From contig JAXLNO010002317.1 of NCBI GenBank assembly GCA_038087875.1, forward strand, positions 2,046,001 through 2,110,000: a stretch of DNA of 64,000 nt, written 5' to 3'. Position 1 is the first letter of the stretch. Each line of letters starts with the position of its first letter. The notes under the pieces were generated by a model. The model was given only the letters and a program-made list of their open reading frames with translations, had not been told where the DNA came from and ran no database searches. This DNA is from Malacoraja senta (lineage: Eukaryota). Positions 14,658 through 54,207 of this stretch are shown here, piece by piece. A program made the translations under genes and the position numbers.

Positions 14658-14661
14658 GAGA

Positions 14662-29310: not shown

Positions 29311-29816
29311 ATTGGCCTCCACAGCCTTCTGTGGCAAAGAATTCCACAGATTCACCACCCTCTGACTAAAGAAATTCCTCCTCATTTCCTTCCTAAAAGA
29401 ATGTCCTTTAATTCTGAGGCTGTGACCTCTCCCACTGGCGGAAATATCCTCTCCACATCCACTCTATCCAAGCCTTTCATTATTCGGTAAGTTTCATTGA
29501 GGTCCCCCCTCATTCTCGAAACTCCTGCGAGTGCAGGCCCAGTGCCGTCAAACGCTCATCATATGTAAACCCACTCATTCCTGGGACCATTCTTGTAAAC
29601 CTCCTCTGGACCCTCTCCAGAGCCAGCACATCCTTCATCAGACATGGGGCTCAAAATTGCTCACAATATTCCAAATGTGGCCTGACCAGCACCTTATAGA
29701 GTCTCAGCATTGCATCCGTGTTGCTTAATGTATATTGGTGGCTGGAGTTTTACTGCAATCACTTTCTCTTCCAGACTGGGAGATCGGATAGCTGACGGGA
29801 TATCTGGAATCGGACA

Positions 29817-29856
29817 ATGATCGGGAGATCGTTCTTCCTGCTCTCCCTTCTCCAAG
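29817..29856 (+). CDS. Siglec/MAG-like gene, signal-peptide exon (exon 29775-29856)
   Basis: tttctcttccag acceptor. ATG at 29817 gives MIGRSFFLLSLLQ. Phase-1 donor CAAG|gt splices in frame to the V-set exon (G+CC = Ala). The donor (gtacca) is weak. Confidence 0.75.
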
Positions 29857-29964
29857 GTACCATCAGCAACTCAGAAGTGTTTATGGGCGAGGAGGGTTTT
29901 ACTGGTTGGCTGCCAGTGACTAGCGGAGTTCCGCAGTGGTCAGTGCAGGGGCCGCTACGATCAT

Positions 29965-30495
29965 TTCCCTGAACACCTTCACTCAGTCTGCCTGGACCTA
30001 CCTGACATCCCAGTTGCCAAACACTTTAATTCCCCTTCCCATTCCCACACTGAACTTTTTGTCCTAGTTCTCCTCCACTGTCAGAGTGAGGCCAAATGCA
30101 AATTGCAGGAACAGCATCTCATATTTTGCTTGGGCAGCTTACAACCCAGTGGTATGAATATTGATTTATCTCACTTCAAGTAAACCCTGCATTCCTTCTC
30201 TCTCCATCCCTCCCCCACACAGGCCGCACCAGCTTCTCGTTCTCACCCAACAAACAGCTAATAATGGCTTGTTTTTTTTTATCATCATTACATTTTTGCA
30301 TATCTTTCATTCATTGTTCTGATTCTCTCTACATCATCGTTTGTCTCTCTTGTTTCCCTTTCCCAAGCCTTTCAGTCTGAAGAAGGGTCTCGACCCGAAA
30401 CGTCACCCATTCCTTCTCTCCAGAGATGCTAAGTTACTCCAGATTTTTGTGTCAATCTTCAGTTTAAACCAGTATCCGCAGTTCCTTCCTGTACA
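29965..30495 (+). mobile_element. PLE fragment (decayed GIY-YIG, 3' UTR, pLTR with intact hammerhead motif)
   Basis: PDIPVAKHFNSP-like coding remnant. CTGAAGA...GAAACGTC at 30377-30404. Confidence 0.8.
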
Positions 30496-30702
30496 CCACT
30501 ACTCTTCACGTTGTATATTAATATGATTTGGACGAGGGGATTGAAAGCTTTGTGGCCAAGTTTGCAGATTATATGAAAATAGGTGGAGGGGCAGGTAGTG
30601 TAGAGAAAGCAGGGACTCTGCAGATGGACTTGGACAGGTTGGGAGAGTGGGCGGGGATGTGGAAGATGGAATATAGTGTAGCAAAGGAGGGAGCGCTGCA
30701 CT

Positions 30703-31050
30703 GTTTTTTTAATCAAAAATAATTCATTTAATTACGATCACGATACAAAACCCCCCAAAAAACCAAACCGTGGTGACACACCCTCCACCATATTACAAAA
30801 TCACCAAATTATTCAGACACTAAATTTCCTAATCACTATGTTACAAATATAATAAATAACTACGATATAACCATGTGCCTCTCTAACACCACCCGGGCGC
30901 GGATGTAACCCCGGTAAAGATGCAAGCAACTGGCTCGGGCAAAGTCCTCTTCTGCCTGGCGCCGTGACTTGCGGATGGCCAGCTTGGCCAGGCCTAGGAG
31001 CAACCCAACCAGGCCATCTTCGGCCCTGCCCACTGCCTAGATCCCGTCAC
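30703..31050 (-). mobile_element. Tx1-clade LINE 3' fragment
   Basis: Minus-strand GRAEDGLVGLLLGLAKLAIRKSRRQ...CLHLYRGYIRARVVLER matches the Tx1 ORF2 C-terminus. A-rich tail at ~30703-30720. Confidence 0.7.
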
Positions 31051-31164
31051 AAGTCCTTCGGTCGCTGACAGCAGAGTCACTCCTCCCCCTACGGACCCTA
31101 GGTGGAGTGGCGGTGCTGCTTGCCCTCTGGACCCTGGCTACAAGGGACAGTCTACTGATCCCTG

Positions 31165-31660
31165 GGAGCACCGCATTGTGGGAGGGGCAGTGAGGAGGGA
31201 GTGACGCACTGTGGGAGGGGCGGTGAGGAGTGACGCACTGTGGGAGGGGCAGTGAGGAGGGAGTGACACACTGTGGGAGGGAGTGACGCACTGTGGGAGG
31301 GGCGGTGAGGAGGGAGTGACACTGGGAGGGGCGGTGAGGAGAGTGATGCACTGTGGGAGGGGCGGTGAGGAGGGAGTGACACACTGGGAGGGGCGGTGAG
31401 GAGGGAGTGACACACTGGGAGGGGCTGTGAGGAGGGAGTGACACTGGGAGGGGCGGTGAGGAGGGAGTGACACACTGGGAGGGGCGGTGAGGAGGGAGTG
31501 ACACAATGTGGGTGGGGCGGTGAGGAGGGAGTGACACACTGGGAGGGGCGGTGAGGAGGGAGTGACACACTGGGAGGGGCGGTGAGGAGGGAGTGAAGCA
31601 CTGTGGGAGGAGTAGTGAGGAGGGAGTGACACACTGTGGGAGGGGCGGTGAGGAGGGAGG
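31165..31660 (+). repeat. GA-rich minisatellite, ~30-32 bp unit (GGAGGGGCGGTGAGGAGGGAGTGACACACT)
   Basis: Directly visible. Inverted copy at ~63765-64000. Confidence 0.95.
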
Positions 31661-31795
31661 CTCTACCACTACACCACCATGCCGCTCTTCTACGCTCCAC
31701 ACACCAGGTCCACAGCGCAGGACAAAAGGTGTGGAAAGTGAGTCCAGTGAACTGACAGGGTGTTCACTGCTAAAGATTGTTCCTTCTCTCCTCAG

Positions 31796-32164
31796 CCGTG
31801 ATGTCGGGACTGTGGAGAGCGGACATTCCACGAGATGTGACAGCGCAGAATGGTTTGTGTGCACGGATTCCGTGTCACTACAGGTACCCGTCGAATCTGA
31901 ACAATAAACCACGGACTGGAATCTGGTTTAACAGTGGGATGCAGGACAACAAAGGTTCTGTACCCTTCCACTCCAGGTATTCCAATCGAGAATCAACAAA
32001 GTTTCAGCATCGGACCCGGCTGTCAGGTGTCCTGAGAGACAACGACTGTTCCCTGATTATAGACAACGTCACGCAGCAAGATGCGGGTCCTTATTATTTC
32101 AGAGTTAATTTTGGAGGGGGGAATCGTTACAACTACCCCACTGTAACATGGCTCAGTGTTACTG
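31796..32164 (+). CDS. Siglec/MAG-like gene, V-set sialic-acid-binding domain exon
   Basis: ctcag acceptor and gtaagt donor, 369 bp, phase 1-1. LWRADIP, LCARIPC, DCSL (Siglec-type B-E disulfide pattern) and DAGPYYFRV with the F-strand Arg. Confidence 0.92.
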
Positions 32165-33154
32165 GTAAGTGCTCTGTCTAATTCACTCATTCACTCAACA
32201 GTTTCTTCCCAGCTGTTATCAGGCAACTGAACCATCCTACCACAACCATAGAGCAATGCTGAACTATCATCAACCTCACTGGTGACCCTCGGACTATCCT
32301 TGATCGGACTTTGGACTGTACACGTTACCTATTCACACACACACACCACAGCATCAGGATCCTTCTGGTTCATTTCTGGATCATCGTGACACCTCCAGTT
32401 TTTACACTGTTATTACCAGGTTTTCATTGCCCATAAATGCTCCTAATATCGACTCCATCTACACTTCACTCAGCCTGAACTAAACTAAACAATGACTGTC
32501 TTATCCTTACTGCCCTTAGTGGAGAACTCTGTCCCCATCTTCCCGATCACAGGTCATCATAACATTCCTGATCCCCGCCCTTTTCAACCTCCCCTGCCCA
32601 TTGTACCTCCTTGTTCAGGGATCATCCTTGTTTAGTTTTGTTTGGTTAGTTAATTTTATTGCCACGTGTACCGTGGTACAGTGGAAAGCTTTTTTGTTGC
32701 GTGCTATCCAGTCAGCGGAAAGACAATACATGATTACAATCGAGCCGTTTACAGTGTTCAGCTGCATGATAAGGGAATAACGTTTAGTGCAAGGTTAAGC
32801 CAGCAAAGTCCGATCAGGGATAGTCTGAAGGTCACCAATGAGGTAGATAGTGGTTCAGGACCGCTCTCTGGTTATAGTTGGATGGTTCAGTTGCCTGATA
32901 ACAGCTGGGAAGAAACTGTCCCTGAAACTGGAGGTGGGCGTTTTCACACTTCTGTACCTTCTATACTTGCCCGGTGGAAGAGGTGAGAAGAGGGAGTGAC
33001 CGGGGAGAGACTGGTCCTTGATAATCTGGAGGTGTGTGTTTTCCCACTTCTATACCTTGTAAAAACATCCTTCCTCGTGTGGGACTGGGATTACAATGTG
33101 AACCGATGTATCCAGTGATATTTAACTAACAGTATCTGTTTCTGTGTGTGTTAG

Positions 33155-33448
33155 ATTTCACAGATAAACCCACGATATTCCCTGCTGAAATGGTGGCAGG
33201 TCAGCCTGTGAACATGACCTGCTCCTTCAACACCACGTGTAATGGAACGGCCCCCACCTTAACCTGGGTCACCCCCGCTGATGAACCACCGCCAGCCTCA
33301 CACAGCGTAACTCAGCGGGGAGACACTCTGACATATACTTCTGTTCTGTCCCTGACCCCAACGCTCAAACATCACGGGAAAAACCTCACCTGCAGAGTCA
33401 CATACCCAACTGTCTCATCGGAGCAGATCCTCACAATGACTGTGCAAT
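33155..33448 (+). CDS. Siglec/MAG-like gene, C2-set domain 2 exon
   Basis: ttag acceptor and gtaagt donor, 294 bp, phase 1-1. KPTIFP...TCSFNTTC...PTLTW...SVLSLTP...HHGKNLTCRV. The extra Cys fits the Siglec D1-D2 disulfide. Confidence 0.92.
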
Positions 33449-34371
33449 GTAAGTATGGAGATCGTTTATTGTGCAGGAACAGCAATAATCCATTAGCAGT
33501 GCTGGTACATAAGGTCATAGGCGATATGAGCAGAATTAGGCCATTCGGCCCATCAAGTCTACTCTGCCATTCAAGCATGGCTGATGTATCTCTCCTAACC
33601 CCTTTCTTCTGCCTTCTCCCCATAACCTCTGACATCCATACTAATCAAATCAACATCAAAAGCTGGAGTAACTCAGCGGGACAGGCAGCATCTCTGGAGA
33701 GAAGGAATGGGTGACGTTTCGGGTCGAGAGCGTTCTTCAGAGTGAAAGTCACGGGAAAGGGAAACGAGAGATATAGACGATGATGTAGAGAGATGTAGGA
33801 CCTACCTGATCTCCCGGTTGCTAAACACTTTAATTCTCCTTCCCATTCCCAAACTGACTTTTCTAGGACTCCTCCACTGTCAGAGGGAGGCTAAACGCAA
33901 ATTGGAGGATCAGCATCTCATATATTGGGCCGTTTACAGCCCAGTGGTATGAATATTGATTTTTCTAACTTCAGGTAGCCCCGGCATTCCCTCTCTCTCC
34001 ATCCCTCCACCACCCAAGTCGCACCAGCTTCTTGTTCTCACCCAACAAACAGCTAACAATGACCTGTTTCCTTTATCATCGTTAATTTTTTGCGTATCTT
34101 TCATTCTTTGTTCTATATCTCTCTACACTGTCTATATCTCTAATTTCCTTAAACATAGAAGTCGGTGTGGACTCAGTGGGTCAAAGGGTCTGTTTCCACA
34201 CTGTATCTCTAAACTAACGTGTGAACGGGTGATCGATGGTCGGCGCAGACTGGGTGGGCCAAAGGGCCTTTTTCCGCGCTGTATCTCTAAAGTCTAAAGA
34301 CTAAAGTCTTTTACAATCCAAGGGTCACGGAAGTGCCGCAAAACTGGTTGCTGAGTTTTATCTGTTTGCAG

Positions 34372-34793
34372 ATGCCCCCCAGAATCTCTGAATCACTTCC
34401 CCCAACAACGTGAACAATTCCTGGGTCAGTATAAAGGAAGGAAACTCTGCAGTGATCCTCTGCTCCGTCCAGAGTTTGCCAGCATCTAACCTGACGTGGA
34501 GACATCTCGGTGTCATAGAAACATAGCAACATAGAAAATAGGTGCAGGAGTAGGCCATTCAGCCCTTTGAGCCTGCACCGCCATTCAATATGATCATGGC
34601 TGATCATCCAACTCAGTATCCTGTACCTGCCTTCTCTCCATACCCCCTGGTGTCACACTGAACACAACACGTTCCAGCAACGAGCTGTGGATGGAGTTCC
34701 CTCAGCTGACGCGGCAGGATGCCGGGGTCTATCAGTGTGTGGCGGAGAATGAACACGGGACAGCAGAGAGGGATGTGACCCTCACTGTAGAAT
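34372..34793 (+). pseudogene. Disrupted Ig domain-3 exon (D3a)
   Basis: Paralog of 41341-41622 with an in-frame TGA after YAPQNL and a 133-bp CR1 3'-end insertion (34516-34648, TSD ggtgtca). Both splice sites are retained. Confidence 0.9.
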
Positions 34794-34859
34794 GTGAGTA
34801 GACACACACTGACACATCTCTATAAACGCAGATGGATTATTGGCCCATGAGAGATGCTG

Positions 34860-35095
34860 GAATTCACTACACACACTCACTCACTCACACCTACACACAG
34901 TCTCCCTCTCTCTCACACACACACACACACATTCTCTCTGTCCCACACATAAACGCCATCACTCACACACTCTCAAACACATACACACTCTCACACACAC
35001 ACACTCACTCAAACACACACACATTCTCTCACGCGCGCACACACACACGCTCTCTCTCACACGCACTCACTCAAACACACACACACACACACCCT
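34860..35095. repeat. Compound (CA)n/(CT)n microsatellite
   Basis: Directly visible. Mirrored at ~53910-54135 and ~60335-60560. Confidence 0.9.
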
Positions 35096-36363
35096 CAAGA
35101 TCTCGGAGAAAACCCACGCAGGTCACGGGGAGAATGTGCAAACTCCATACAGACAGGCACCGGTGGTCAGGATCGAACCCGGGTCGATAGCGCTGTGAGG
35201 CAGCAGCTTTACCCACTGCGCCACCGTGCCACCCACATCTACAATCTTTTGTGTTCCCAACCTGTATGTAACCCGTCTGACCTCTGCCTGACATTGTTGG
35301 ATCATATTGGTCTTTCTACCCAGAAACCCTCAATGCCTCTCAATGCTTCAAGGGAATAATGTTTAGTGCAAGAAAAAGCCAGTGAAGTCCTATCAAAGAT
35401 AGCACCATAGTAATTCAGGACTGTGCTCTGGTTGTGGTGGGATGGTTCAGTTGCCTGATAACAGCTGGAAAGAAACTGTCCCTGAATCTGGAGGTGTGCG
35501 TTTGCACACTGCTGTACCTCTTGCCCGAGGGGAGAAGAGAGAGTGGCGGGGGAGCGACTCGTCCTTGATTTTGCTGCTGGCCTTGCCAAGGCAGCGTGAA
35601 GTGTAGATAGAGTCAACCAGCCAACATGCCCCATCTATACTAGTCCCACATGCCTGCGTTTGGCCCATATCCCTCATACCTATCCTATCCATGTACCTGT
35701 TCAACTATTTCTTAAACGCCTGGATAGTCCCAGCCTCAACTACCTCCTCCGGCAGCTCGTTCCATACACCCACCGCCCTTTGTGTGGAAAAATGTTACCC
35801 TCAGGTTCCATTAAATCTTTTCCCCTCTCCTCTTAAACCTAAGTCCTCTGGTCCTCGAATCCCCTACTCTGGGCAAGAGACTTTGTGTGTCTACCCGATC
35901 AATTCCTCCCAATAATTTTGTACACCTCTATAAGATCACCCCTCATCCACCTGCCCTCCGAGGAATAGAGTCCCAGCCTGCCCCAACCTCCCTGTAGCTC
36001 ATGCCTCCAATCCTGGAGAACAAGGGTAGGTGACAAAGGTATTTTATTTACTGTTGTCCTCTTGGGTTTCATTGTCTGTATAACTCATTACCACCTACCC
36101 CAGAGCCAACAATGGACCATTGTGGGCTCGACGTTTTTCCTGATCATCGTTGCTTTTGCATATCTTTCATTTGTGCCATCGATATCTCTCGTTTCCCGCT
36201 CTCCGACTCTCAGTCTGAAGAAGGGTCTCGACGCGAAACGCCACCTATTCCTTTTTTCCAGAGATGCTCCTGACCCGCTGCGTTACTCCAACACTTTGTG
36301 TCTATCATGAATGTTTATATAGTATCTTGTTTCAATGAGAAGGTAATATAGTATCGCCTTTAA

Positions 36364-36874
36364 GGGCCTGTCCCACGAGCATGCGACTGCATGAGGCAAG
36401 CGCGACCAAACCGGAAGCGGGGGCCGCGCGGAGGTCGAGTGATCCCCTTACAGGGCTGGTCCCACCAGCATGCGGCTGCATGCGGTGAGCGTGACCAAAC
36501 CGGAAGCGGGGGCCGCGCGGAGGTCGAGTGAATGATGTGAAGTTCGAGCGAAGTCCGCGGGAAGTTCGCGCGTGACGTACGGCGTGAAGACGTTGCGTAC
36601 GGTGTCGGGACGGTGCGTACGGTGTCGAGGCGGTGCGTGCGGCGTCGAGGCGGTGCGTGCGGCCTCCATGCAGCAGCGGGCCGGCAGGCCTTTGCCGCAC
36701 GGAATTTATGAACACTCAGTTTTTCGGAGCCCCGTGCAATGTCGGGACCAACTCCGCACAAATCCATGCGGCTCCCGCGATCAAAGTGGGACCAGCCCCG
36801 CGAGGCCGCACGGCTAGCACGACCACGTTAGGTCGTGCTTGCCGCATGCAGTCGCATGCTCGTGGGACAGGCCC
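36364..36874. mobile_element. GC-rich MITE with long TIRs (GGGCCTGTCCCACGAGCATGCGACTGCATG), flanked by TTAA
   Basis: TIRs at both ends and TTAA on both sides. Internal direct repeats. Copies at 52130-52642 and 58555-59067 arise from the duplication. Superfamily uncertain (Harbinger-like TIR core, TTAA or TA target). Confidence 0.85.
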
Positions 36875-36904
36875 TTAAGACTTCAAACAGGTGGTTCATG
36901 TTTA

Positions 36905-38650
36905 CAAGATCACAAGTTATAGGAATAGAATTAGGCCATTCGGCCCATCGAGTCTACTCCGCCATTCAATCATGGCTCTACCTCCTAATCCCATTTTCCT
37001 TCCTTCTCCCCATAACCCTTGACACTTGTTCTAATCAAGAACTTGTTTATCTCTGCCTTAAAAATATCCATTGACTCGGCCTCCACAGCCCTCTGAGGCA
37101 ATGAGTTCCACAGATTAACTACCCTCTGACTAAAGAAGTTCCTTCTCACCTCCTTTCTAAAAGAGCGCCATTTAATTCTGACGCTATGTCCTCTGGTGCT
37201 GGACTCTCCCACCAGTTGAAACAATCTTTCCACATCCACATGCCTTTCATTATTCTGTAAGTTTCAATGAGGTCCCCCACCCAACCTACTAAATTCCAGT
37301 GAGTGGAGGCCCAGTGCTGGCAAGCGCTCATCATATGCTATCCCACTCATTCCTGGAATCATTCTTGTAAACCTCCTCTGGACCCTCTCCAGAGCCAGCA
37401 CATCCTTCCTCAGATATGAGGCCCAAATTTGCTCACAATATTCCAAATGCAGCCTGACCAGCGCCTTATGGGGCCTCAGCATTACATCTCTGTTTTTGTA
37501 TTGCAGACCTCTTGATATAAATGCTAGCATTGAATTTGCCTTCCTTACTACCGATTCAACTTGCAAATTAACTTTTTGGGAGTCCTGTACCAGCACTCCC
37601 AAGTCCCTTTGCACCTCTGATTTCTGCATTCTCTCTCCATTTAGAAAATACTCTACGCCTTTACTCTTATTACCAAAATGCATGACTCCACACTTTGCAA
37701 TACTGAATTTCATCTGCTACTTCTCTACCCACTCTCATAACCTGTCCAAGTCCTTCTGCAGAGTCCCTGCTTTCTCTACGCTATCTACCTCAGCATCACC
37801 GGCAAACTTGGCCACAAAGTCTTCAATCCCCTTATCCAAATCATTACTATACAACATGAAGAGAAGTGGCCCCAGCACCGACCCTTGAGGAACTCACTGG
37901 ACACTGGCAGCCAACATGAAAAAGCTCCTTTATCGCAACTCTTTGCTTTCTGCCATCCAGCCAACCCGCTATCCATGCTAGTATCTTCCCTTTAATACCA
38001 TGGTCTCTCATCTTCCCCAGCAGACTGACATACGGCACCTAATCTAGGGAAAGAAACAGAAACATAAAAAATATGTGCAGGAGTAGGCCATTCGGCCCTT
38101 CCAGCCAGCACCACTATTCAATATGATCACGGTTATTCATCCAAAATCAGTGACCCGTTCCTGCTTTCTCCCCATATCCCTTGATTCCGTTAACCCTAAG
38201 AGCTAAATCTAACTCTCTCTTGAAAACATCCAGCCTCCACCGACTCACAACTCTCTGGGTGAAAAGGTTTTTCCTCAACTCAGTCCTAAATGGATGACCC
38301 CTTATTCTTAAACTGACCCCTGGTTCTGGACTCCACCAACATCAGGAACATTTTTCCTGCATCTAGCCTATCGAATCCTTTAAGAATTTTATATGTTTCT
38401 ATAAGATTTTATAAGATTCTATAAGATTCTCTCTCTAAATTCTAAATTCTAAATTCCAGCGAATGCAAGCCCAGTCAATCCATTCTTTCATCCTATGACA
38501 GTCCCGCCATGACAGTACCTACGCTGCCCTCCCACAATAGCAAGAATGTCCTTCCTCAAATTAGGAGACCAAAACTGCACATAATACTCCAGGTGCGGTC
38601 TCACCAGGGCCCTGTATAACTGCAATAGGTCCACCTTGCTCCTTTCTCAA
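36905..38650 (-). mobile_element. Two CR1 LINE fragments (RT and 3' end)
   Basis: ORFs 37264-37713, 36985-37239 and 37847-38038 (LLGKMRDHGIKG, CGVMHFG, LALERVQRRFTRMIPG). Mirrored at 50345-52090 and 56770-58515. Confidence 0.9.
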
Positions 38651-39359
38651 ATCCTCTCGCTATACAAGGATACAAAGGACATTTATTGTGACATACACCA
38701 ATTGGTGTAGTGAAATTTGACTTGCCATGCAGCACACAAATAAAGATAAGACTCAACATTAAAGAATTTTACAATAAACATAAAAACAGCTCCCCACAAT
38801 GGTTCCCACTGTGAGGGAAGGCACAAAGTCCAGTCCCCATCCCCTTGTCCACCCATAGTCGGGCCTATTGAGGCCTCTGCAGTCGGTGCTACGGTGGCCC
38901 GATGTTTCCGGCCCTCTCGCCGGGTGATGGCTCTCCGGCGTCGGGAGAACCCTCTCAGCGGCTTGGGACACCTGGAACGGCCGCTTCCTTACTGGAGACC
39001 GCGGCTTCCGAAGCCAACAGGCCGCGCTGGACGGAGCTCCACCACTGGTGATCTCGCCGAGAGATCCCAGGCTCCCGATGTTAAAGTCAGCGCCGCCGCC
39101 CGCGGCTGGCCGCTCCACGAACCCGCAGCTCCGCGATGTTCACCTGCGGTCTCAGCATTCCGGAGCTCCAGCGCAGCGACCCGGGCAAGGCATCGCCCGC
39201 TCCGCGATAGCGCTCCAGCGCTGTGCTGCCGCCGAAGCGGTGGTTCTGGCCGGTCCCGTCAGGAAACGCCGCTCCAGACCCGTTGGTAGGCTGCGAGGAC
39301 GGGTCGAAGATGCCGCCCGGAGAAAAGCTGCCTCTCCGACCGGGTAGGGTCCAGGAAGA

Positions 39360-41030
39360 GCAAGATCTTCCCTTCACAAAACCATGCTGACCGGCCCATT
39401 TTATTGTGAACTAAGTACTGCGGAACCTCTTCCTTTACAATTGATCCTAAAATCTTACCAACCACCGAAGTCAGGCTAACCGGCCTATAGTTTCCGCTCT
39501 TCTGCTTTGCTGCCTTCTTGTACAGCGGGATGATATTCGCAAATTTCCCATCTTCATGAACCACTCCTAACTCTAGTGATTCTTGAAATATCACAACTAA
39601 TGCCTCCATAATCTCCGAGGCCACCTCCTTCAGAACCCAGGGGTGCAGTCCATCCTGTCCAGGTGACTTATCCGCTCTCAGACCTTTCAGTTTTCCCAGC
39701 ACCTTCTCCTTAGTAATCGCCACTCCACTAACTTCCACCCCTGACTCTAGGATTGCAGGCACCCTGCTGGTGTCCCCCACGGTGAGGACTGATGCAAAAA
39801 AGTTATTCAATTCCTCTTCCATTTCTTGATTTCTCCTGCATCATTCTCCCAACATCCTCTTTTTATTACTCTTTATATATCTGTAGAAACTCTTGCTATC
39901 CTCTTTTACATTATTGGCCAGCTTACATTCGTACTGAAGATAGACACTAAAAAGCTGGACTAACTCAGCGGGACAGGCAGCATCTCTGGAGAGAAGGAAT
40001 GGGTGATATTTCAGGTCGAGGCCCTTCTTCAGATTGGTTAGGGATAAGGTAAACAATGGATACAGACGATGATGTCGAGAGATAAAGAACAATGAATGTA
40101 AGGTTGGAGAGCAGGAGGCATCACAGAGGGGGAGCAGTGAGAGAGGATGTGGCAGAACTGCATTGTTGTGAAAGATTGCAGCAGGATCTTGATCGATTGG
40201 CCAGATGAGCTGAGGAATGGTTGGTGGAGTGTAATACCGAGAAGTGTGAGATGTTGAATTTTGGGACATCTAACAAGAGCAGGACCTACACAGTGAATGG
40301 TGGCCTCTGGGGAGTGTTGAAGAGCAGAGAGATCAAGGAATGCAGGTGCAAGGTTCCTTCAAGATCGAGTTGCAGGAAGATCGGGTGGGCAAATGTATTG
40401 AATATAGTCAGAGTTTTGAATATAGAAGTTGGGTGATCATGTTGAGTTGTATAAGACGTTGGTAAGACCGCGTTTAGAATATTGTGTAAAGTTCTGGGCA
40501 CCATGTTATAGGAAAGATATTGTCAAGCTTGAAATGGTTCAGATATGATTTATGAGGATGCTGCTAGGACTAGAGGGTCTGAGCTATAGGGAGAGGTTGA
40601 GTCGGCTGGGTCTCCATTTCTTGGAGCGCAGGAGGATGAGGGGTGATCATATAGAGGCGTATAGATCATGAGGGGAATAGATCGGGTCGATGCACAAAAT
40701 CTTTTCCCCTTCACCTTGAACCCATGCCTAGAGTAGGCGAATCGAGGACCAGAGGACATAGGTTCAAGGTGAAGGGGAAAAGATTTAATAGGAGGGGTAA
40801 CTTTTTCATACAAAGGGTAGTTGGTGTATGGAACAAACTGCCAGAGGAGGTAGTTGAGGCAGGGATTATCCCAGCGTTTAAGAAACAGTTAGACAGGTAC
40901 ATGGATAGGACAGGTTTGGAGGGATATGGGCCATATGCGGGCAGGTGGCACTAGTGTATCTGGGACATGTTGGCTGGTGTGGGCAAATTAGGCCGAAGGG
41001 CCTGTTTCCACACTATCACCCTATGACTCC
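39360..41030. mobile_element. CR1 fragment (minus, 39360-39940), PLE pLTR fragment (minus, ~39945-40100) and CR1 3' fragment (plus, 40105-41030)
   Basis: KSPGQDGLHPWVLKE...ANIIPLYKK...NYRPVSLTSVVGK. Hammerhead motif near 40010-40035. MPRVGESRTRGH. Confidence 0.85.
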
Positions 41031-41340
41031 AACTCTCGTCGGAAAGAGGAGGAGATCCTCTTCAAGGTAGACATATCTTGAGGAGATTTTGCAGTGGAGC
41101 AGACGAAATGTGGAGGAAGGAACTGCAGGTGCTGGTTTAAACCAATGATAGACACAAAGAGCTGGAGATACTCAGCTGGTCAGGCAGCATCTCTGGAGAG
41201 AAGGAATGGGTGATGTTTCGGGTCGAGACCCTTCTTCAGGCTGGTTACATTTGTACTTCATCTTTTCTCTCCATATTGTCCTGGTTGACACGTGGAATTC
41301 TGCCGTGTTAACTCACGTTTAAACCTTTGTTTGTCTTTAG

Positions 41341-41622
41341 ATGCTCCACGGAATCTCTCAATCACTTTCCACGACGACGCAAACAGTTCCCGGGTCAGTG
41401 CAAAGGAAGGAAACTCTGCGGCGATCCTCTGCTCCGTCCAGAGTTTCCCAACATCCAACATGACGTGGAGACATCTCGGTGTCACGCTGAACACAACACG
41501 TTCCAGCAACGAGCTGTGGATGGAGTTCCCTCAGCTGACACGGCAGGATGCCGGGGTCTATCAGTGTGTGGCAGAGAATGAACACGGGACAGCAGAGAGG
41601 GATGTGACCCTCACTGTAGAAT
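41341..41622 (+). CDS. Siglec/MAG-like gene, intact Ig domain-3 exon (D3b)
   Basis: ctttag acceptor and gtgagt donor, 282 bp, phase 1-1. APRNLSIT...ILCSVQSFPTSNMTW...DAGVYQCVAENEHG. Confidence 0.92.
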
Positions 41623-42424
41623 GTGAGTAGACACACACTGACACGTCCCTCAAAACATCATAAGATCATAAGTGATAGGAGCAGAATTAGATTGCCGAAT
41701 GGCCAAGTCTACTCCGCCATTCAATCATGACTGATCTATCTCTCCCTCCTAACCCCATTCTCCTGCCTTCTCATTGAGCCATAGTCAGAGTCATAAAGTC
41801 TTAGAGTGATACAGCGTGGAAACAGGCCCTTTGGCTCAACTTGCTTTCAACGGCCTACATGTCCCAGCTACATTAGTCCCACCTGCCCACGTTTGGCCCT
41901 TATCCCTTCAAACTTGTCATATCCATGTCTGTTTCAACTACCTCCTCTGGCAGTTGAAAAAGGAGGTCATACTACCTCCTCTGTATGAAAAAGTCACCAA
42001 CTGGATTCCTATTTAATCTTTTCCCCTTCACCTTGAACCAATGTCCTCTGGTCCTCGATTCACCTACTCTGTGCAAGAGACTTGGTGCGTCTTCCCGATC
42101 TATTCCCATCATGATTTTGTACACCTCTGTAAGATCACCCCTCATCCTCCTGCGCTCCAAGGAATAGAGTCCCAGCCTGCTCAACCTCTCCCTATAGCTC
42201 AGGCCCTCGAGTCCTGGCCACATCCTCGTAAATCTTCTCTGTACCCTTTCCTGCTATACAACATATTTCCTATATTTCCTCTCTCCTCTTCTGAGATGAG
42301 GAAGATTAAATAAAGTTATTTGAAGCATTGTGAAGCAGTTCTGGTCACCACATTACAGGAAGGATGTGGCCAGGGTGCAGAATGCTGCCTGGATTAGAGA
42401 GTATTAGCAATAAGGAGTTTTAAG

Positions 42425-42740
42425 GAGGGCTCAGTGGTTCAATGGTAGAGTTGCTGCCTCACAGCACCAGAGAGCCGTGTTTGATCCTGACTACGGATGC
42501 TTGTCTCTTGGGAGTTTGTAAGTTCACCTCATGACCTGTGTGGGTTTTCTCCGGGTGCTCCGGTTTCCTCCCACACTCAAGTCGTACAGGTTTGTAGGTT
42601 AATTGACTTGTTATATTTGTAAATTGTCCCTAGTGTGTGTGGGATAGTGTAAGTGTGCGGGGATCGCTGGTCGGCGTGGACAAGGTGGGCCGAAGGGCCT
42701 GTTTCTGCTCTGTATCTCTAAACTAAATGAAACTAAAGAA
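42425..42740 (+). mobile_element. V-SINE (HE1-like)
   Basis: Degenerate A/B boxes, V core and tail. Confidence 0.8.
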
Positions 42741-43062
42741 GAGGTTGGAAAGATTTGGATTGTTTTCCATGGAGTTCATAAGGTCATAAGTGATAGGAGC
42801 AGAATTAGGCCATTCGGCCCATCGAGTCAGAATGAGGCCATTCGGCCCATTCATTCATGGCTGATCTATCTCTCCCTCCTAACCCCATTCTCCTGCCTTC
42901 TCCCCATAACCTCTGACACCCGTACTAATCAAGAATCTATCTATCTCTGCCTTAAATATATCCACTGACTTGGCCTCCACTGCCGTCTGTGGCAATGAAT
43001 TCCACAGATTCACCACCCAGTTCAAAGGCTGAGGGGAGACCCGATATAAATATATAAAACTA

Positions 43063-43560
43063 CTAGACTAAGTGGGACCCGTTGGGTCCCATTCTGACAT
43101 GGGATGGCTGGTCCCCCAACGCAATATTCCACCACTCACCCATAGCCCCCAACTGCGCAGGCACGGCTGAGGGGTTCCTGTTGTGACGCTCCTGATACCC
43201 CCTAACCCCCCCCCCACTCCGCCCCTTGCCCTTCCACCTCCCCCCCCCCCCCCCCCACGCACTCACTCCACCCTCCCATCCATTCTTTGCCGCTCTCTGG
43301 CGGCACAACCATTCCCGCCCATTGGCTTCCCATTGTGACGTAGAATACATAGATACATACGCAGGCATTACTGCACAGGCACAGCTGACGGGCATGGCAA
43401 GCGGAAAAGGACTATATTAATGCTTAAAATGTGAGTAACTTAAAATACAACAACAATTTGAACGTTAAAGATGAGATTTATTCAGTTCAGTTCTTTCTTG
43501 TTGCGTCTCTTGTTGCATTCTGCTGCTAACTGCATCTCGAAGTCTCTTTGCTGTTGATGA
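43063..43560 (-). mobile_element. Helitron-like non-autonomous element (3' end supported; 5' end uncertain)
   Basis: Minus strand ends GGGACCC-AAC-GGGTCCC hairpin (43074-43090), then ACTTAGT-CTAG|T. Confidence 0.55.
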
Positions 43561-43837
43561 AAAAAAGTAATCTTCCTAAAGAAACTCCCTTTAATTCCGA
43601 GACTGTGACCTCTGGTCCTTGACTCTCCCATAGTGGAAACATCCTCTGCACAACGACTCTATCCAGGCCTCTGCCTGCACGTGATCCATATCCCTCCAGC
43701 ATCTGCAGTTCCTCCCTACACTAATCAAATCAATGGTACACTGACAAGCTCATCTGTCCTTCATTGATGAGACACTGCTTTGGATACAGGTACAAAAGAC
43801 ACAAAGTGCTGGAGGAACTGAGAGTCATAGAGTCTTA

Positions 43838-44262
43838 TGCCCCTGTCCCACTTAGGAAACCTGAACGGAAACCTCTGGAGACTTTGCGCCCCACCCAAGG
43901 TTTACGAGCGGTTCCCGGAGGTTTTTGTCAGTCTCCCTAATGGTCGAAAGTGGTTGCCGCTTCCATGTTCCGGCAATTATTTCAAAAAATTCAAAACCGG
44001 CCGCGACTAAAAATAGGTTGCCATTTAAAAAATCGGTTATATTTTAGTCAAAGCCGGTTGCGATGCTAGTTGAAGGTGGTTGCCGGAGGTTGCAGGTAGT
44101 TACCTTCCACTACCTGCAACCTCAGGCAAACACATGCAACCTCCGGCAACCACCTTCAACTAGCATCGCAACCGGCTTCGACTAAAAAAATTACCGGACG
44201 TTTTTTAATTTTTTTAAATAATCGCCGGAACATACAAGAAGCAGAAACCACTTTCGACCATT
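43838..44262. mobile_element. Truncated MITE-like element with a ~320-bp internal palindrome
   Basis: Left end gcccctgtcccactt resembles the 36364 TIR core. Arms 43939-44099 and ~44110-44262 are reverse complements. Confidence 0.65.
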
Positions 44263-44383
44263 CGTGGTCAACGCGGACTTGATAGGCCGAAGGTCCTTTT
44301 TCCGCGCTGTATCTCTGAACAACATAGAAATTGTGTGAACGGGTGATCGGTGGTCGGCGAGGACACGGTGGGCCGAAGATCGA

Positions 44384-45298
44384 AGTTTCCCAGCATCTAA
44401 CCTGATGTGGGAACATCTCGGTATCACGCTGAACACAACACGTTCCAGCAACGAGCTGTGGATGGAGTTCCCTCAGCTGACACGGCAGAACTACTATCTA
44501 AATGGCATCAAGTTGGGAAAAGGGGAAGTACAACGGGATCTGGGGGTCCTTGTACATCAGTCTATGAAAGTAAGCATGCAGGTACAGCAGGCAGTGAAGA
44601 AAGCGAATGGCATGTTGGCCTTTATAACAAGAGGAATCGAATATAGGAGCAAAGCGGTCCTTCTGCAGTTGTACAGGGCCCTAGTGAGACCACACCTGGA
44701 GTATTGTGTACAGTTTTGGTCACCTAATTTGAGGAAGGACATTCTTGCTATTGAGAGAGTGCAGCGTAGGTTTACAAGGTTAATTCCCGAGATGGCGGGA
44801 CTGTCATATGCTGAGAGAATGGAGCAGCTGAGCTTGTATACTCTGGAGTTTAGAAGAATGAGAGGGAATCTCATTGAAACATATAAGATTGTTAAGGGTT
44901 TGGACATGCTAGAGGCAGGAAACATGTTTCCGATGTTGGGGGAGTCCAGAACCAGGGGCCACAGTTTAAGAATAAAGAGTAAACCATTTGGAACGGAGAT
45001 GAGGAAACACTTTTTCACACAGAGAGTGGTGAGTCTGTGGAATGTGTAGGAATGTGGAGGCGGTTCTCTGGATGCTTTCAAGAGAGAGCTAGATAGGGCT
45101 CTTAAAAATAGCGGAGTCAGGGGAAATGGGGAGAAGGCTGGAACGGGGTACTGATTGGGGATGATCAGCCATGATCACATGGCTCGAAGGGCCGAATGGC
45201 CTACTCCTGCACCTATTGTCTATTGACGCCGGAGTCTATCAGTGTGTGGCGGAGAATGAACACGGGACAGCAGAGAGGGATGTGACCCTCACTGTAAT
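44384..45298 (+). pseudogene. Third Ig domain-3 exon copy (D3c), 5'-truncated and split by CR1
   Basis: 44384-44488 (SFPASNLMWEHLGITLNTTRSSNELWMEFPQLTRQ) and 45225-45298 (DAGVYQCVAENEHG...) are separated by a CR1 3' fragment. 2-bp deletion before the gtgagt donor. Confidence 0.88.
44489..45224 (+). mobile_element. CR1 LINE 3' fragment inserted in D3c
   Basis: YYLNGIKLGKGEVQRDLGVLVH...RPHLEYCVQFWSP...GESRTRGH, followed by the 3' UTR. Confidence 0.95.
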
Positions 45299-46675: not shown

Positions 46676-46875
46676 NNNNNNNNNNNNNNNNNNNNNNNNN
46701 NNNNNNNNNNNNNNNNNNNNNNNNNNNNNNNNNNNNNNNNNNNNNNNNNNNNNNNNNNNNNNNNNNNNNNNNNNNNNNNNNNNNNNNNNNNNNNNNNNNN
46801 NNNNNNNNNNNNNNNNNNNNNNNNNNNNNNNNNNNNNNNNNNNNNNNNNNNNNNNNNNNNNNNNNNNNNNNNNNN
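46676..46875. other. Assembly gap (200 N)
   Basis: Run of N; the round length suggests a placeholder of unknown true size. Confidence 0.98.
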
Positions 46876-47181: not shown

Positions 47182-47463
47182 ATTCTACAGTGAGGGTCAC
47201 ATCCCTCTCTGCTGTCCCGTGTTCATTCTCTGCCACACACTGATAGACCCCGGCATCCTGCCGTGTCAGCTGAGGGAACTCCATCCACAGCTCGTTGCTG
47301 GAACGTGTTGTGTTCAGCGTGACACCGAGATGTCTCCACGTCATGTTGGATGTTGGGAAACTCTGGACGGAGCAGAGGATCGCCGCAGAGTTTCCTTCCT
47401 TTGCACTGACCCGGGAACTGTTCGCGTCGTCGTGGAAAGTGATTGAGAGATTCCGTGGAGCAT
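47182..47463 (-). CDS. Siglec-like copy 2, intact domain-3 exon (D3b type)
   Basis: 282 bp with AG/GT boundaries; same translation as 41341-41622. Confidence 0.9.
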
Positions 47464-50400
47464 CTAAAGACAAACAAAGGTTTAAACGTGAGTTAACACG
47501 GCAGAATTCCACGTGTCAACCAGGACAATATGGAGAGAAAAGATGAAGTACAAATGTAACCAGCCTGAAGAAGGGTCTCGACCGAAACATCACCCATTCC
47601 TTCTCTCCAGAGATGCTGCCTGACCAGCTGAGTATCTCCAGCTCTTTGTGTCTATCATTGGTTTAAACCAGCACCTGCAGTTCCTTCCTCCACATTTCGT
47701 CTGCTCCACTGCAAAATCTCCTCAAGATATGTCTACCTTGAAGAGGATCTCCTCCTCTTTCCGACGAGAGTTGGAGTCATAGGGTGATAGTGTGGAAACA
47801 GGCCCTTCGGCCTAATTTGCCCACACCAGCCAACATGTCCCAGATACACTAGTGCCACCTGCCCGCATATGGCCCATATCCCTCCAAACCTGTCCTATCC
47901 ATGTACCTGTCTAACTGTTTCTTAAACGCTGGGATAATCCCTGCCTCAACTACCTCCTCTGGCAGTTTGTTCCATACACCAACTACCCTTTGTATGAAAA
48001 AGTTACCCCTCCTATTAAATCTTTTCCCCTTCACCTTCAACCTATGTCCTCTGGTCCTCGATTCCCCTACTCTAGGCATGGGTTCAAGGTGAAGGGGAAA
48101 AGATTTTGTGCATCTACCCGATCTATTCCCCTCATGATCTATACGCCTCTATATGATCACCCCTCATCCTCCTGCGCTCCAAGAAATGGAGACCCAGCCG
48201 ACTCAACCTCTCCCTATAGCTCAGACCCTCTAGTCCTAGCAGCATCCTCATAAATCATATCTGAACCATTTCAAGCTTGGCAATATCTTTCCTATAACAT
48301 GGTGCCCAGAACTTTACACAATATTCTAAACGCGGTCTTACCAATGTCTTATACAACTCAACATGATCACCCAACTTCTATATTCAAAACTCTGAATATA
48401 TTCAATACATTTGCCCACCCGATCTTCCAGCAACTCGATCTTCAAGGAACCTTGCACCTGCATTCCTTGATCTCTCTGCTCTTCAACATTCCCCAGAGGC
48501 CACCATTCACTGTGTAGGTCCTGCTCTTGTTAGATGTCCCAAAATTCAACATCTCACACTTCTCGGTATTACACTCCACCAACCATTCCTCAGCTCATCT
48601 GGCCAATCGATCAAGATCCTGCTGCAATCTTTCACAACAATGCAGTTCTGCCACATCCTCTCTCACTGCTCCCCCTCTGTGATGCCTCCTGCTCTCCGAC
48701 CTTACATTCATTGTTCTTTATCTCTCGACATCATCGTCTGTATCCATTGTTTACCTTATCCCTAACCAATCTGAAGAAGGGCCTCGACCTGAAATATCAC
48801 CCATTCCTTCTCTCCAGAGATGCTGCCTGTCCCGCTGAGTTAGTCCAGCTTTTTTGTGTCTATCTTCAGTACGAATGTAAGCTGGCCAATAATGTAAAAG
48901 AGGATAGCAAGAGTTTCTACAGATATATAAAGAGTAAAAAAAGAGGATGTTGGGAGAATGATGCAGGAGAAATCAAGAAATGGAAGAGGAATTGAATAAC
49001 TTTTTTGCATCAGTCCTCACCGTGGGGGACACCAGCAGGGTGCCTGCAATCCTAGAGTCGGGGGTGGAAATTAGTGGAGTGGCGATTACTAAGGAGAAGG
49101 TGCTGGGAAAACTGAAAGGTCTGAGAGCGGAGAGCTGGACAGGATGGACTGCACCCCAGGGTTCTGAAGGAGGTGGCCTCGGAGATTATGGAGGCATTAG
49201 TTGTGATATTTCAAGAATCACTAGAGTTAGGAGTGGTTCATGAAGATGGGAAATTTGCGAATATCATCCCGCTGTACAAGAAGGCAGCAAAGCAGAAGAG
49301 CGGAATCTATAGGCTGGTTAGCCTGACTTCGGTGGTTGGTAAGATTTTAGGATCAATTGTAAAGGAAGAGGTTACGCAGTACTTAGTTCACAATAAAATG
49401 GGCCGGTCAGCATGGTTTTGTGAAGGGAAGATCTTGCCTAATGAATCTGCTGGAGTTCTTTGAGGAAGTTAATACCTGGACATCAGACAGGGGTGGCTAT
49501 GGATGAAAGAAAGCAAATGGCATGTTGGCCTTCATAGGGCTGCCCAGCCTGCAGCTGTCTGCCTTTTCACTTTCTTTTATTTTTTAGTGTGTTAAAAAGT
49601 GTTTTGTTTGGAGGTCTATTCTTGTTTATGTGGGGGGTGGGAAACTGCTCTTCCTGGTCCCTACCCGGTCGGAGAGGCAGCTTTTCTCCGGGCAGCATCT
49701 TCGACCCGTCCTCGCAGCCTACCAACGGGTCTGGAGCGGCGTTTCCTGACGGGACCGGCCAGAACCACCGCTTCGGCGGCAGCACAGCGCTGGAGCGCTA
49801 TCGCGGAGCGGGCGATGCCTTGCCCGGGTCGCCGCGCTGGAGCTCCGGAATGCTGAGACCGCAGGTGAACATCGCGGAGCTGCGGGTTCATGGAGCGGCC
49901 AGCCGCGGGCGGCGGCGCTGACTTTAACATCGGGAGCCTGGGATCTCTCGGCGAGATCACCAGTGGTGGAGCTCCGTCCAGCGCGGCCTGTTGGCTTCGG
50001 AAGCCGCGATCTCCAGTAAGGAAGCGGCCGTTCCAGGTGTCCCAAGACGCTGAGAGGGTTCTCCCGACGCCGGAGAGCCATCACCCAGCGAGAGGGCCGG
50101 AAACATCGGGCCACCGTAGCACCGACTGCAGAGGCCTCAATAGGCCCGACTATGGGTGGACAAGGGGATGGGGACTGGACTTTGTGCCTTCCCTCACAGT
50201 GGGAACCATTGTGGGGGGATGTTTTTATGTTTATTGTAAAATTCTTTAATGTTGAGTCTTATCTTTATTTGTGTGCTGCATGGCAAGTCAAATTTCACTA
50301 CACCAATTGGTGTATGTCACAATAAATGTCCTTTGTATCCTTGTATAGCGAGAGGATTTGAGAAAGGAGCAAGGTGGACCTATTGCAGTTATACAGGGCC

Positions 50401-53400
50401 CTGGTGAGACCGCACCTGGAGTATTATGTGCAGTTTTGGTCTCCTAATTTGAGGAAGGACATTCTTGCTATTGTGGGAGGGCAGCGTAGGTACTGTCATG
50501 GCGGGACTGTCATAGGATGAAAGAATGGATTGACTGGGCTTGCATTCGCTGGAATTTAGAATTTAGAATTTAGAGAGAGAATCTTATAGAATCTTATAGA
50601 AACATATAAAATTCTTAAAGGATTCGATAGGCTAGATGCAGGAAAAATGTTCCTGATGTTGGTGGAGTCCAGAACCAGGGGTCACAGTTTAAGAATAAGG
50701 GGTCATCCATTTAGGACTGAGTTGAGGAAAAACCTTTTCACCCAGAGAGTTGTGAGTCGGTGGAGGCTGGATGTTTTCAAGAGAGAGTTAGATTTAGCTC
50801 TTAGGGTTAACGGAATCAAGGGATATGGGGAGAAAGCAGGAACGGGTCACTGATTTTGGATGAATAACCGTGATCATATTGAATAGTGGTGCTGGCTGGA
50901 AGGGCCGAATGGCCTACTCCTGCACCTATTTTTTATGTTTCTATGTTTCTTTCCCTAGATTAGGTGCCGTATGTCAGTCTGCTGGGGAAGATGAGAGACC
51001 ATGGTATTAAAGGGAAGATACTAGCATGGATAGCGGGTTGGCTGGATGGCAGAAAGCAAAGAGTTGCGATAAAAGGAGCTTTTTCATGTTGGCTGCCAGT
51101 GTCCAGTGGAGTTCCTCAAGGGTCGGTGCTGGGGCCACTTCTCTTCATGTTGTATAGTAATGATTTGGATAAGGGGATTGAAGACTTTGTGGCCAAGTTT
51201 GCCGATGATGCTGAGGTAGATAGCGTAGAGAAAGCAAGGACTCTGCAGAAGGACTTGGACAGGTTATGAGAGTGGGTAGAGAAGTAGCAGATGAAATTCA
51301 GTATTGCAAAGTGTGGAGTCATGCATTTTGGTAATAAGAGTAAAGGCGTAGAGTATTTTCTAAATGGAGAGAGAATGCAGAAATCAGAGGTGCAAAGGGA
51401 CTTGGGAGTGCTGGTACAGGACTCCCAAAAAGTTAATTTGCAAGTTGAATCGGTAGTAAGGAAGGCAAATTCAATGCTAGCATTTATATCAAGAGGTCTG
51501 GAATACAAAAACAGAGATGTAATGCTGAGGCCCCATAAGGCGCTGGTCAGGCTGCATTTGGAATATTGTGAGCAAATTTGGGCCCCATATCTGAGGAAGG
51601 ATGTGCTGGCTCTGGAGAGGGTCCAGAGGAGGTTTACAAGAATGATTCCAGGAATGAGTGGGATAGCATATGATGAGCGCTTGCCAGCACTGGGCCTCCA
51701 CTCACTGGAATTTAGTAGGTTGGGTGGGGGACCTCATTGAAACTTACAGAATAATGAAAGGCATGTGGATGTGGAAAGATTGTTTCAACTGGTGGGAGAG
51801 TCCAGCACCAGAGGACATAGCGTCAGAATTAAATGGCGCTCTTTTAGAAAGGAGGTGAGAAGGAACTTCTTTAGTCAGAGGGTAGTTAATCTGTGGAACT
51901 CATTGCCACAGAGGGCTGTGGAGGCCGAGTCAATGGATATTTTTAAGGCAGAGATAAACAAGTTCTTGATTAGAACAAGTGTCAAGGGTTATGGGGAGAA
52001 GGAAGGAAAATGGGATTAGGAGGTAGAGCCATGATTGAATGGCAGAGTAGACTCGATGGGCCGAATGGCCTAATTCTATTCCTATAACTTGTGATCTTGT
52101 AAACATGAACCACCTGTTTGAAGTCTTAAGGGCCTGTCCCACGAGCATGCGACTGCATGCGGCAAGCACGACCTAACGTGGTCGTGCTAGCCGTGCGGCC
52201 TCGCGGGGCCGGTCCCACTTTGATCGCGGGAGCCGCATGGATTTGTGCGGAGTTGGTCCCGACATCGCACGGGGCTCCGAAAAACTGACAGTGTTCATAA
52301 ATTCCGTGCGGCAAAGGCCTGCCGGCCCGCTGCTGCATGGAGGCCACACGCACCGCCTCGACGCCGCACGCACCGCCTCGACACAGTACGCACCGTCCCG
52401 ACACCGTACGCAACGTCTTCACGCCGTACGTCACGCGTGAACTTCCCGCGGACTTCGCTCGAACTTCACATCATTCACTCGACCTCCGCGCGGCCCCCGC
52501 TTCCGGTTTGGTCGCGCTCACCGCATGCAGCCGCATGCTGGTGGGACCGGCCCTGTAAGGGGATCACTCGACCTCCGCGCGGCCCCCGCTTCCGGTTTGG
52601 TCGCGCTTGCCTCATGCAGTCGCATGCTCGTGGGACAGGCCCTTAAAGGCGATACTATATTACCTTCTCATTGAAACAAGATACTATATAAACATTCATG
52701 ATAGACACAAAGTGTTGGAGTAACGCAGCGGGTCAGGAGCATCTCTGGAAAAAAGGAATAGGTGGCGTTTCGCGTCGAGACCCTTCTTCAGACTGAGAGT
52801 CGGAGAGCGGGAAACGAGAGATATCGATGGCACAAATGAAAGATATGCAAAAGCAACGATGATCAGGAAAAACGTCGAGCCCACAATGGTCCATTGTTGG
52901 CTCTGGGGTAGGTGATAACGAGTTATACAGACAATGAAACTCAAGAGGACAACAGTAAATAAAATACCTTTGTCACCTACCCTTGTTCTCCAGGATTGGA
53001 GGCATGAGCTACAGGGAGGTTGGGGCAGGCTGGGACTCTATTCCTCGGAGGGCAGGTGGATGAGGGGTGATCTTATAGAGGTGTACAAAATTATTGGGAG
53101 GAATTGATCGGGTAGACACACAAAGTCTCTTGCCCAGAGTAGGGGATTCGAGGACCAGAGGACTTAGGTTTAAGAGAGGGGAAAAGATTTAATGGAACCT
53201 GAGGGTAACATTTTTCCACACAAAGTGTGGTGGGTGTATGGAACGAGCTGCCGGAGGAGGTAGTTGAGGCTGGGACTATCCCAGCGTTTAAGAAATAGTT
53301 GAACAGGTACATGGATAGGATAGGTATGAGGGATATGGGCCAAATGCAGGCATGTGGGACTAGTATAGATGGGGCATGTTGGCTGGTTGACTCCATCTAC

Positions 53401-54207
53401 ACTTCACGCTGCCTTGGCAAGGCCAGCAGCAAAATCAAGGACGAGTCGCTCCCCCGCCACTCCCTCTTCTCCCCTCGGGCAAGAGGTACAGCAGTGTGCA
53501 AACGCACACCTCCAGATTCAGGGACAGTTTCTTTCCAGCTGTTATCAGGCAACTGAACCATCCCACCACAACCAGAGCACAGTCCTGAATTACTATGGTG
53601 CTATCTTTGATAGGACTTCACTGGCTTTTTCTTGCACTAAACATTATTCCCTTGAAGCATTGAGAGGCATTGAGGGTTTCTGGGTAGAAAGACCAATATG
53701 ATCCAACAATGTCAGGCAGAGGTCAGACAGGCTACATACAGGTAGGGAACACAAAAGATTGTAGATGTGGGTGGCACGGTGGCGCAGTGGGTAGAGCTGC
53801 TGCCTCACAGCGCTATCGACCCGGGTTCGATCCTGACCACCGGTGCCTGTCTGTATGGAGTTTGCACATTCTCCCCGTGACCTGCGTGGGTTTTCTCCGA
53901 GATCTTGAGGGTGTGTGTGTGTGTGTGTTTGAGTGAGTGCGTGTGAGAGAGAGCGTGTGTGTGTGCGCGTGTGAGAGAATGTGTGTGTGTTTGAGTGAGT
54001 GTGTGTGTGTGAGAGTGTGTATGTGTTTGAGAGAGTGTGTGAGTGATGGCGTTCATGTGTGGGACAGAGAGAATGTGTGTGTGTGTGTGTGAGAGAGAGG
54101 GAGACTGTGTGTAGGTGTGAGTGAGTGTGTGTAGTGAATTCCAGCATCTTTCATGGGCCAATAATCCATCTGCGTTTATAGAGATGTGTCAGTGTGTGTC
54201 TACTCAC

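Follow-up and report, generated by a model that had tools for sequence, protein, structure and literature searches.

Gene organization

We analysed a 64,000-nt stretch of DNA from the skate Malacoraja senta (contig JAXLNO010002317.1; hereafter the window), which consists of vertebrate DNA rich in transposable elements and contains a single gap of 200 N. Its forward strand carries a gene that encodes a signal peptide, a V-set domain of the type found in Siglecs (immunoglobulin-like lectins that bind sialic acid), a C2-set domain and one or more stalk domains of the I-set type. The locus is very probably the 5′ part of a gene belonging to an elasmobranch-specific, multi-copy Siglec family that is distinct from MAG (Siglec-4), and its product is a predicted lectin.

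The open part of the gene comprises four coding exons. Exon 1 (29817–29857, forward strand, as are the other three) begins with the ATG, encodes the signal peptide MIGRSFFLLSLLQ and ends in a phase-1 donor (CAAG/GT); it is identical to the N-termini of the skate relatives P0242, P0264 and P0178. The junction with the next exon reads MIGRSFFLLSLLQ-A-VMSG.W, and the annotated N-termini of the skate relatives (MIGRSFFLLSLLQAVMSG.W) equal the exon 1 peptide plus this junction letter for letter. The V-set exon (31796–32164) encodes the predicted sialic-acid-binding domain with Trp6, Cys21, Cys26, Cys84 and Arg102 (numbered on the exon peptide), and the C2-set exon (33155–33448) contributes an extra cysteine that is predicted to pair with the V domain. 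The fourth is an intact I-set exon (41341–41622), designated I3b to distinguish it from two broken I-set exons, I3a and I3c, on the same strand. All four are bounded by GT donors and AG acceptors, every junction is in phase 1 and the joined codons specify Ala, Asp and Tyr, which gives an open coding length of about 330 codons. The joined exons contain nine N-X-S/T sequons (one in V, four in C2 and four in I3b). In tblastn searches, skate relatives matched the window exons with E values of 3e-59, 6e-47 and 3e-40, far beyond chance. The original prediction, made from the DNA letters, of four phase-1 exons encoding a signal peptide, a V-set, a C2 and a third immunoglobulin (Ig) domain with many N-glycosylation sites agrees with these canonical GT–AG borders and sequon counts. 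Its proposal of a cartilaginous-fish host also fits, because the nearest proteins come from the skates Amblyraja, Leucoraja and Rhinoraja.

Assignment to the Siglecs

In Siglecs, an arginine on the F strand makes a salt bridge to the carboxylate of sialic acid; one of the B-strand cysteines bonds to domain 2 and the other bonds to the E strand. The HMMER alignment with mouse MAG sets SGLW/SGHW, GLCARIPC/GTCVSIPC, DCSLII/NCTLLL and YYFRVNFGGGNRYNY/YYFRGDLGGYNQYTF opposite each other and pairs the A-strand tryptophan, both B-strand cysteines, the E-strand cysteine and the arginine (YYFRV, compared with YYFRG in MAG). Two cysteines of the C2 exon (NMTCSFNTTCNG; C..NTTC) align with NLTCSVSWACEQG of CD33. 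Each of the hallmarks that had been named beforehand (an A-strand aromatic residue, the B–E cysteines, an extra cysteine directed to domain 2 and the F-strand arginine in YYFRV) is thus found at its place in the alignments with MAG and CD33.

A phmmer search of the PDB with the V exon returned Siglecs as all of the 18 best matches, with E values from 1.2e-16 to 1.6e-6. MAG ranked first (1.2e-16), followed by CD33, Siglec-10, -5 and -8, sialoadhesin, Siglec-7 and Siglec-15; the first non-Siglec family was JAML (2.5e-5), eleven orders of magnitude weaker. Pfam matches were V-set and Ig_CD22, both above cut-off, for the V exon, C2-set_2 for the C2 exon and I-set for I3b. The AlphaFold model of the V domain, calculated with 65 aligned sequences as input, has a pLDDT (predicted local distance difference test) of 92.1. 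In a Foldseek search with this model, the 46 best PDB matches and the 24 best Swiss-Prot matches were all Siglecs, with template-modelling scores of 0.8–0.9 to sialoadhesin (Sn), MAG, CD33 and Siglec-7/8/10. Siglecs alone therefore occupy the top of the sequence matches, with the V exon and with a family profile alike, and of the fold matches.

The positions concerned are strongly conserved in the family to which the gene belongs. Among 158 family V domains, Trp6 is present in 149, Cys21 in 157, Cys26 in 158, Cys84 in 158, Arg102 in 144 and Tyr113 in 140, and the window gene has all of them. By analogy with solved Siglec structures, the V domain would bind the carboxylate of terminal sialic acid through the F-strand arginine, with the A-strand tryptophan and the G-strand tyrosine packing on the sugar. 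The same structures suggest the usual Siglec disulfides for this protein, namely a B–E pair and a B-strand cysteine that would tie the V domain to the C2 domain.

The essential arginine is replaced in 14 of the 158 V domains (by lysine in ten and by serine in three), a loss that parallels the arginine-mutated Siglecs of primates. The family thus tolerates non-lectin members, at about 9% of its V domains, and rapid change in the V-set could reflect a protein ligand. A Siglec fold that is retained for a ligand other than sialic acid is nevertheless unlikely for the present gene, as this copy keeps the arginine, the tryptophan, the G-strand tyrosine and all of the cysteines, at positions that are 88–100% conserved in the family.

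The elasmobranch family

Scanning 1.84 billion cluster representatives with HMMER yielded 931 matches at E ≤ 0.001, the top ones all being from sharks and rays. At the same threshold and within the length band of one search we counted 155 relatives from about 24 shark and ray species. These are automatic models that carry the NCBI names Siglec-5/6/8/10/11/12/13/14, MAG-like and CD33-like. A literature search, which did not extend to subscription journals, found no paper on the Siglecs of sharks, rays or skates apart from a single line, in passing, in the article on the whale-shark genome (PMC8455134). The suspicion that the gene is part of an under-described chondrichthyan expansion is therefore supported, with no paper found that describes the family.

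In family members the V and C2 domains precede a stalk of one to ten I-set domains; each species has dozens of paralogs, with 2 to 12 Ig domains. Four models from rays and sharks (P0001, P0002, P0003 and P0154) carry two to four Siglec-type V domains in a row before a single C2 domain, and in this they depart from most mammalian Siglecs.

Closest to the window gene are proteins of the skates Amblyraja radiata, Leucoraja erinacea and Rhinoraja longicauda, with identities of 74–76% in V and 88–92% in C2 and I-set. The L. erinacea 'MAG-like' XP model (P0164) and the A. radiata 'Siglec-12' models (P0200 and P0242) share the exon plan and the signal peptide of the window gene; they are 81% identical to it over V plus C2 and about 90% in C2 and I-set, but only 74–76% in V. 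P0164 differs in having two intact I-set exons and, 1 kb downstream, an exon for a lysine-bearing anchor, which the window lacks.

We surveyed the tails of 130 family models. A transmembrane segment with a motif of the ITIM type (immunoreceptor tyrosine-based inhibitory motif; e.g. AVYANL...VEYAEL) is present in 59, and a further 36 combine a transmembrane segment with a longer tail, in which xIYENC or VYANC motifs are frequent. In eight, a lysine or arginine lies in the anchor and the tail is short (WKCIVALIVLAV...CRNK), as partners of the DAP12 type would need; four have a transmembrane segment and a short tail without lysine or arginine, and 23 have no transmembrane segment. If the window gene resembles these relatives, its product would be located on immune cells and would signal through an ITIM-type tail or a lysine-bearing anchor, in the manner of paired receptors. 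Members of the family are expressed, as the intron-less coding sequences of the close skate relatives P0211 and P0422 lie on Logan contigs (1467 and 994 bp) that are barely longer than the coding sequences themselves, i.e. on spliced transcripts.

Phylogenetic position

In a tree of V plus C2 with 136 rows, the window gene lies in a skate-only clade of 19 rows (support 99), which is nested in a batoid group and then in the clade of the elasmobranch family. The shark and the ray sequences group separately, the pattern expected from lineage-specific expansion or from concerted evolution. A second V plus C2 tree of 60 rows included 15 mammalian CD33-related Siglecs, frog Siglecs, gecko and frog MAG, and CD22-like fish genes. 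Here the elasmobranch family forms a clade with support of 95/95; gecko and frog MAG join a sturgeon 'MAG-like' model (98/89) and then the CD22-like fish group (100/96). One branch (97/86) joins the family with the tetrapod CD33-related group. This pairing is the best tree but is not secure, the tree being unrooted and without Siglec-1, Siglec-15 and true CD22. The V–C2 units of two frog models, P0129 (Pelodytes ibericus) and P0130 (Rhinoderma darwinii), join the mammalian CD33-related Siglecs (100/99), which indicates that amphibians also have that branch.

That the locus is a diverged skate ortholog of MAG is suggested by several similarities. No PDB entry matches the V exon better than MAG (1.2e-16), the best Swiss-Prot fold matches are MAG, and NCBI calls many of the relatives 'MAG-like'. 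Among PDB entries the I-set exon has its best-placed match in MAG domain 3, which ranks third by E value after contactin-2, and the YYFR and N-terminal SG.W motifs are shared. Against this, V-set identity to MAG is 32–36%, no higher than to CD33, and a PDB search with the family profile gives nearly equal scores for MAG, Siglec-5 and CD33 (114, 112 and 108 bits). MAG is a single gene with a V and four C2 domains, whereas the window has V, C2, one intact and two broken I-set exons and belongs to a family of many copies with variable layouts and immune-type tails (ITIM motifs or lysine anchors in the relatives). Constraining the family and MAG to a single clade lowers the log-likelihood by 15.9 and is rejected by the approximately unbiased (AU) test (p 0.004). 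We therefore rejected MAG orthology, which is highly improbable for a gene that is neither single-copy nor built of a V plus four C2 domains, and the view that this is a lineage-specific Siglec rather than a strict MAG ortholog stands. A search for the skate's own MAG gene did not find it, so that its separate existence is not demonstrated; the shark 'MAG-like' model P0080 shares only 28% identity with gecko MAG, and its tail is CD22-like.

The same test did not reject a clade of the family with the six MAG/CD22-like sequences (p 0.117) or with three shark 'MAG-like/SMP-like' genes (p 0.174), and the affinity to the CD33-related Siglecs (Siglec-3, -5 to -12, -14 and -16) is to be read accordingly. 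The resemblance to that group extends to the V–C2–(Ig)n layout, the essential arginine, the Siglec cysteine pattern, a multi-gene family with lineage-specific clades, a V domain that evolves faster than the stalk, some members that lack the arginine, and relatives with ITIM tails or charged anchors. The elasmobranch family differs in its stalk of repeated I-set exons, which are closest to MAG domain 3, and in the tandem V domains of some members, and the present copy has no tail in the window.

Rate of evolution

Nonsynonymous and synonymous rates (dN and dS) were calculated by the Nei–Gojobori method on the exon DNA of the window gene and three skate paralogs, i.e. in six pairwise comparisons among four sequences. 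For the V exon, dN/dS was 1.6–2.3 in all six. For the C2 and I-set exons it was 0.3–0.7, except for one C2 value of 1.33, and dS was similar (0.05–0.17). The excess of replacements in V relative to the stalk gave Fisher p values of 0.010 and 0.020 in two pairs, the pairs being non-independent. Variation in V is concentrated in residues 44–68 and 104–120 of the exon peptide, which in Siglec structures would correspond to the C–C′ region and the G strand, respectively. A V domain that changes faster than the stalk would be expected if ligands or pathogens drive V. A rapidly evolving V-set on a slower stalk is a known pattern of the mammalian CD33-related Siglecs.

Broken I-set exons and inverted copy

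Exon I3a (34372–34793, forward strand) contains an in-frame stop and a 134-bp piece of a transposon (34515–34648), and its splice sites are intact. The stop lies in the context APQNL*ITS, where a relative reads APQNLSITS. The remnant I3c (44381–45298, forward strand) has lost its first third, is split at about 44489–45194 by a fragment of a long interspersed nuclear element (LINE) and lacks 2 bp at its end; its coding pieces are 44381–44488 and 45195–45298. The junction with the LINE reads ...QLTRQ/NYYLNGI, and the L. erinacea model P0436 reads ...QLTRQDYYLNGI. As this junction lies at the matching position of the exon, two loci or species appear to have the insertion in common, and it is probably old.

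The gap (46676–46875) separates two inverted copies of the locus. On the reverse strand, the second copy comprises a V-set exon (63259–63627) with one amino-acid difference (K52E), a C2 exon (61975–62268) with one (K to Q), a broken I3a exon (60630–61051) that shares the stop and the insert of the first copy, and two intact I-set exons, the first at 54208–54489 and the second at 47182–47463, about 300 bp from the gap. Positions 31425–40894 are repeated in inverted orientation at 64000–54532 with 99.3% identity, the remainder being 98.5–98.9% identical; the repeat reaches 41926 on the left and, on the right, 46876, the first base past the gap. The right arm has one additional exon-plus-intron unit of 6.4 kb (49646–54352 and 56061–60774).

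The structural instability seen at the locus may in part be an effect of assembly, the inverted copy being a second haplotype of one gene and not a second gene. The right contig begins at the gap, at a point that lies exactly inside the repeat, and mirrors 31425–41926; over the 9.5 kb of 31425–40894 the arms differ by 48 substitutions (0.5%) and ten small indels. The additional 6.4-kb unit would suit two haplotypes and two paralogs equally well, and we regard the two possibilities as evenly balanced.

Status of the gene

Several observations weigh against the reading preferred here. Two of the three I-set exons on the forward strand, I3a and I3c, are broken. An exon for a transmembrane or cytoplasmic segment is absent from the whole window, as judged by tblastn with the tails of the 130 family models at E values of up to 10 and then of up to 200 with a word size of 2. 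The 1.3 kb that bears the anchor exon of the Leucoraja paralog has no counterpart in the window, and when the 3 kb that follow the last I-set exon of this paralog were used as a blastn query, only transposons matched. The relatives include type I membrane proteins with a signalling tail or a charged anchor, and the window does not encode such a protein in full. No protein identical to the window exons was found in the databases searched, the best matches being 76% (V) and 92% (C2 and I-set) identical. The divergence of the two inverted arms is equal in exons (0.53%) and elsewhere (0.50%), so that it gives no sign of constraint. Finally, the excess of dN over dS within V alone is not significant (p 0.09–0.26).

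These features could be explained if the copy were a dead, 3′-truncated duplicate of a living family, in which the exons are open merely because the duplicate is young. To the missing anchor exon, the lack of an exactly matching annotated protein, the stop and transposon piece in I3a and the split and frameshifted I3c would be added the LINE junction (...QLTRQ/xYYLNGI), whose recurrence at this point of the exon in a Leucoraja model suggests that the decay of the 3′ region is old. We consider a pseudogene to be a substantial possibility, somewhat short of an even chance. On the other hand, both copies retain open reading through the four exons (approximately 330 codons), with canonical splice sites and every key residue in place. 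The broken exons can be skipped without loss of frame, since all exons are in phase 1. The left contig ends at the gap only 5 kb after I3b, so the 3′ end may simply be unassembled, and the absence of an anchor exon from the window says nothing firm about the gene itself.

A soluble product would offer another way in which the gene could dispense with an anchor. Reading through the I-set donor (GAAT/GTGAGTAG) gives Cys-Glu-stop at 41623–41631 (I3b) and likewise at 34794–34802 (I3a), and the skate models P0182, P0200, P0224 and P0159 end in ...TVECE, which is this read-through. As the window shares this donor context at 41623–41631, a soluble V–C2–I-set form is possible for this gene, and the family may regularly make such isoforms. 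The gene as seen in the window may thus have its 3′ end in or beyond the gap, may encode a soluble form that ends two codons past the I3b donor, or may be a truncated dead copy.

Implications for Siglec evolution

Siglecs are the main sensors on vertebrate immune cells of sialic acid as a mark of 'self'. The rapidly evolving CD33-related branch is treated as a tetrapod, and chiefly mammalian, feature. The window offers a clear and legible case of a shark-and-ray family with the behaviour of these Siglecs: the binding residues are conserved, the V domain is variable, copies differ in how many stalk exons they have, and the relatives have inhibitory or activating anchors. We tentatively suggest, as a possibility that we would put at clearly less than even, that sharks and rays have a CD33-related-type Siglec system of their own, in which each species has dozens of genes, the V domain binds sugar and is subject to diversifying selection, and inhibitory anchors are paired with activating ones. 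Such a family would provide a second, independent system in which to follow the co-evolution of sialic-acid receptors with their ligands or with pathogens. If it also shared ancestry with the tetrapod CD33-related Siglecs, the class would have arisen in the ancestor of jawed vertebrates and would later have been lost in teleosts. Shared ancestry would contradict the published view, according to which fish regularly have only Siglec-1, CD22, MAG and Siglec-15 and fish genomes lack CD33-related Siglecs (PMC7226832). The single locus is of modest weight, as it may be incomplete or dead and its relatives are already present in automatic annotation; the family is the more interesting object.

Other features of the window

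No cellular genes were found in the flanks of the window, where the only open reading frames are those of retroelements. Open frames at 90–734 and 9625–10200 have a weak match to GIY-YIG (about 22 bits, compared with a Pfam cut-off of 22.6), as in Penelope-like retroelements, and an RVT_1 frame lies at 13755–14906 on the reverse strand. Intron 1 of the Siglec gene contains a proline-rich minisatellite (31037–31912) with a 291-codon open frame on the reverse strand (PPLPQCVTPSS repeats). The C-terminal tail of the Leucoraja 'Siglec-5' model P0026 matches this minisatellite and looks like an annotation artefact in that model.

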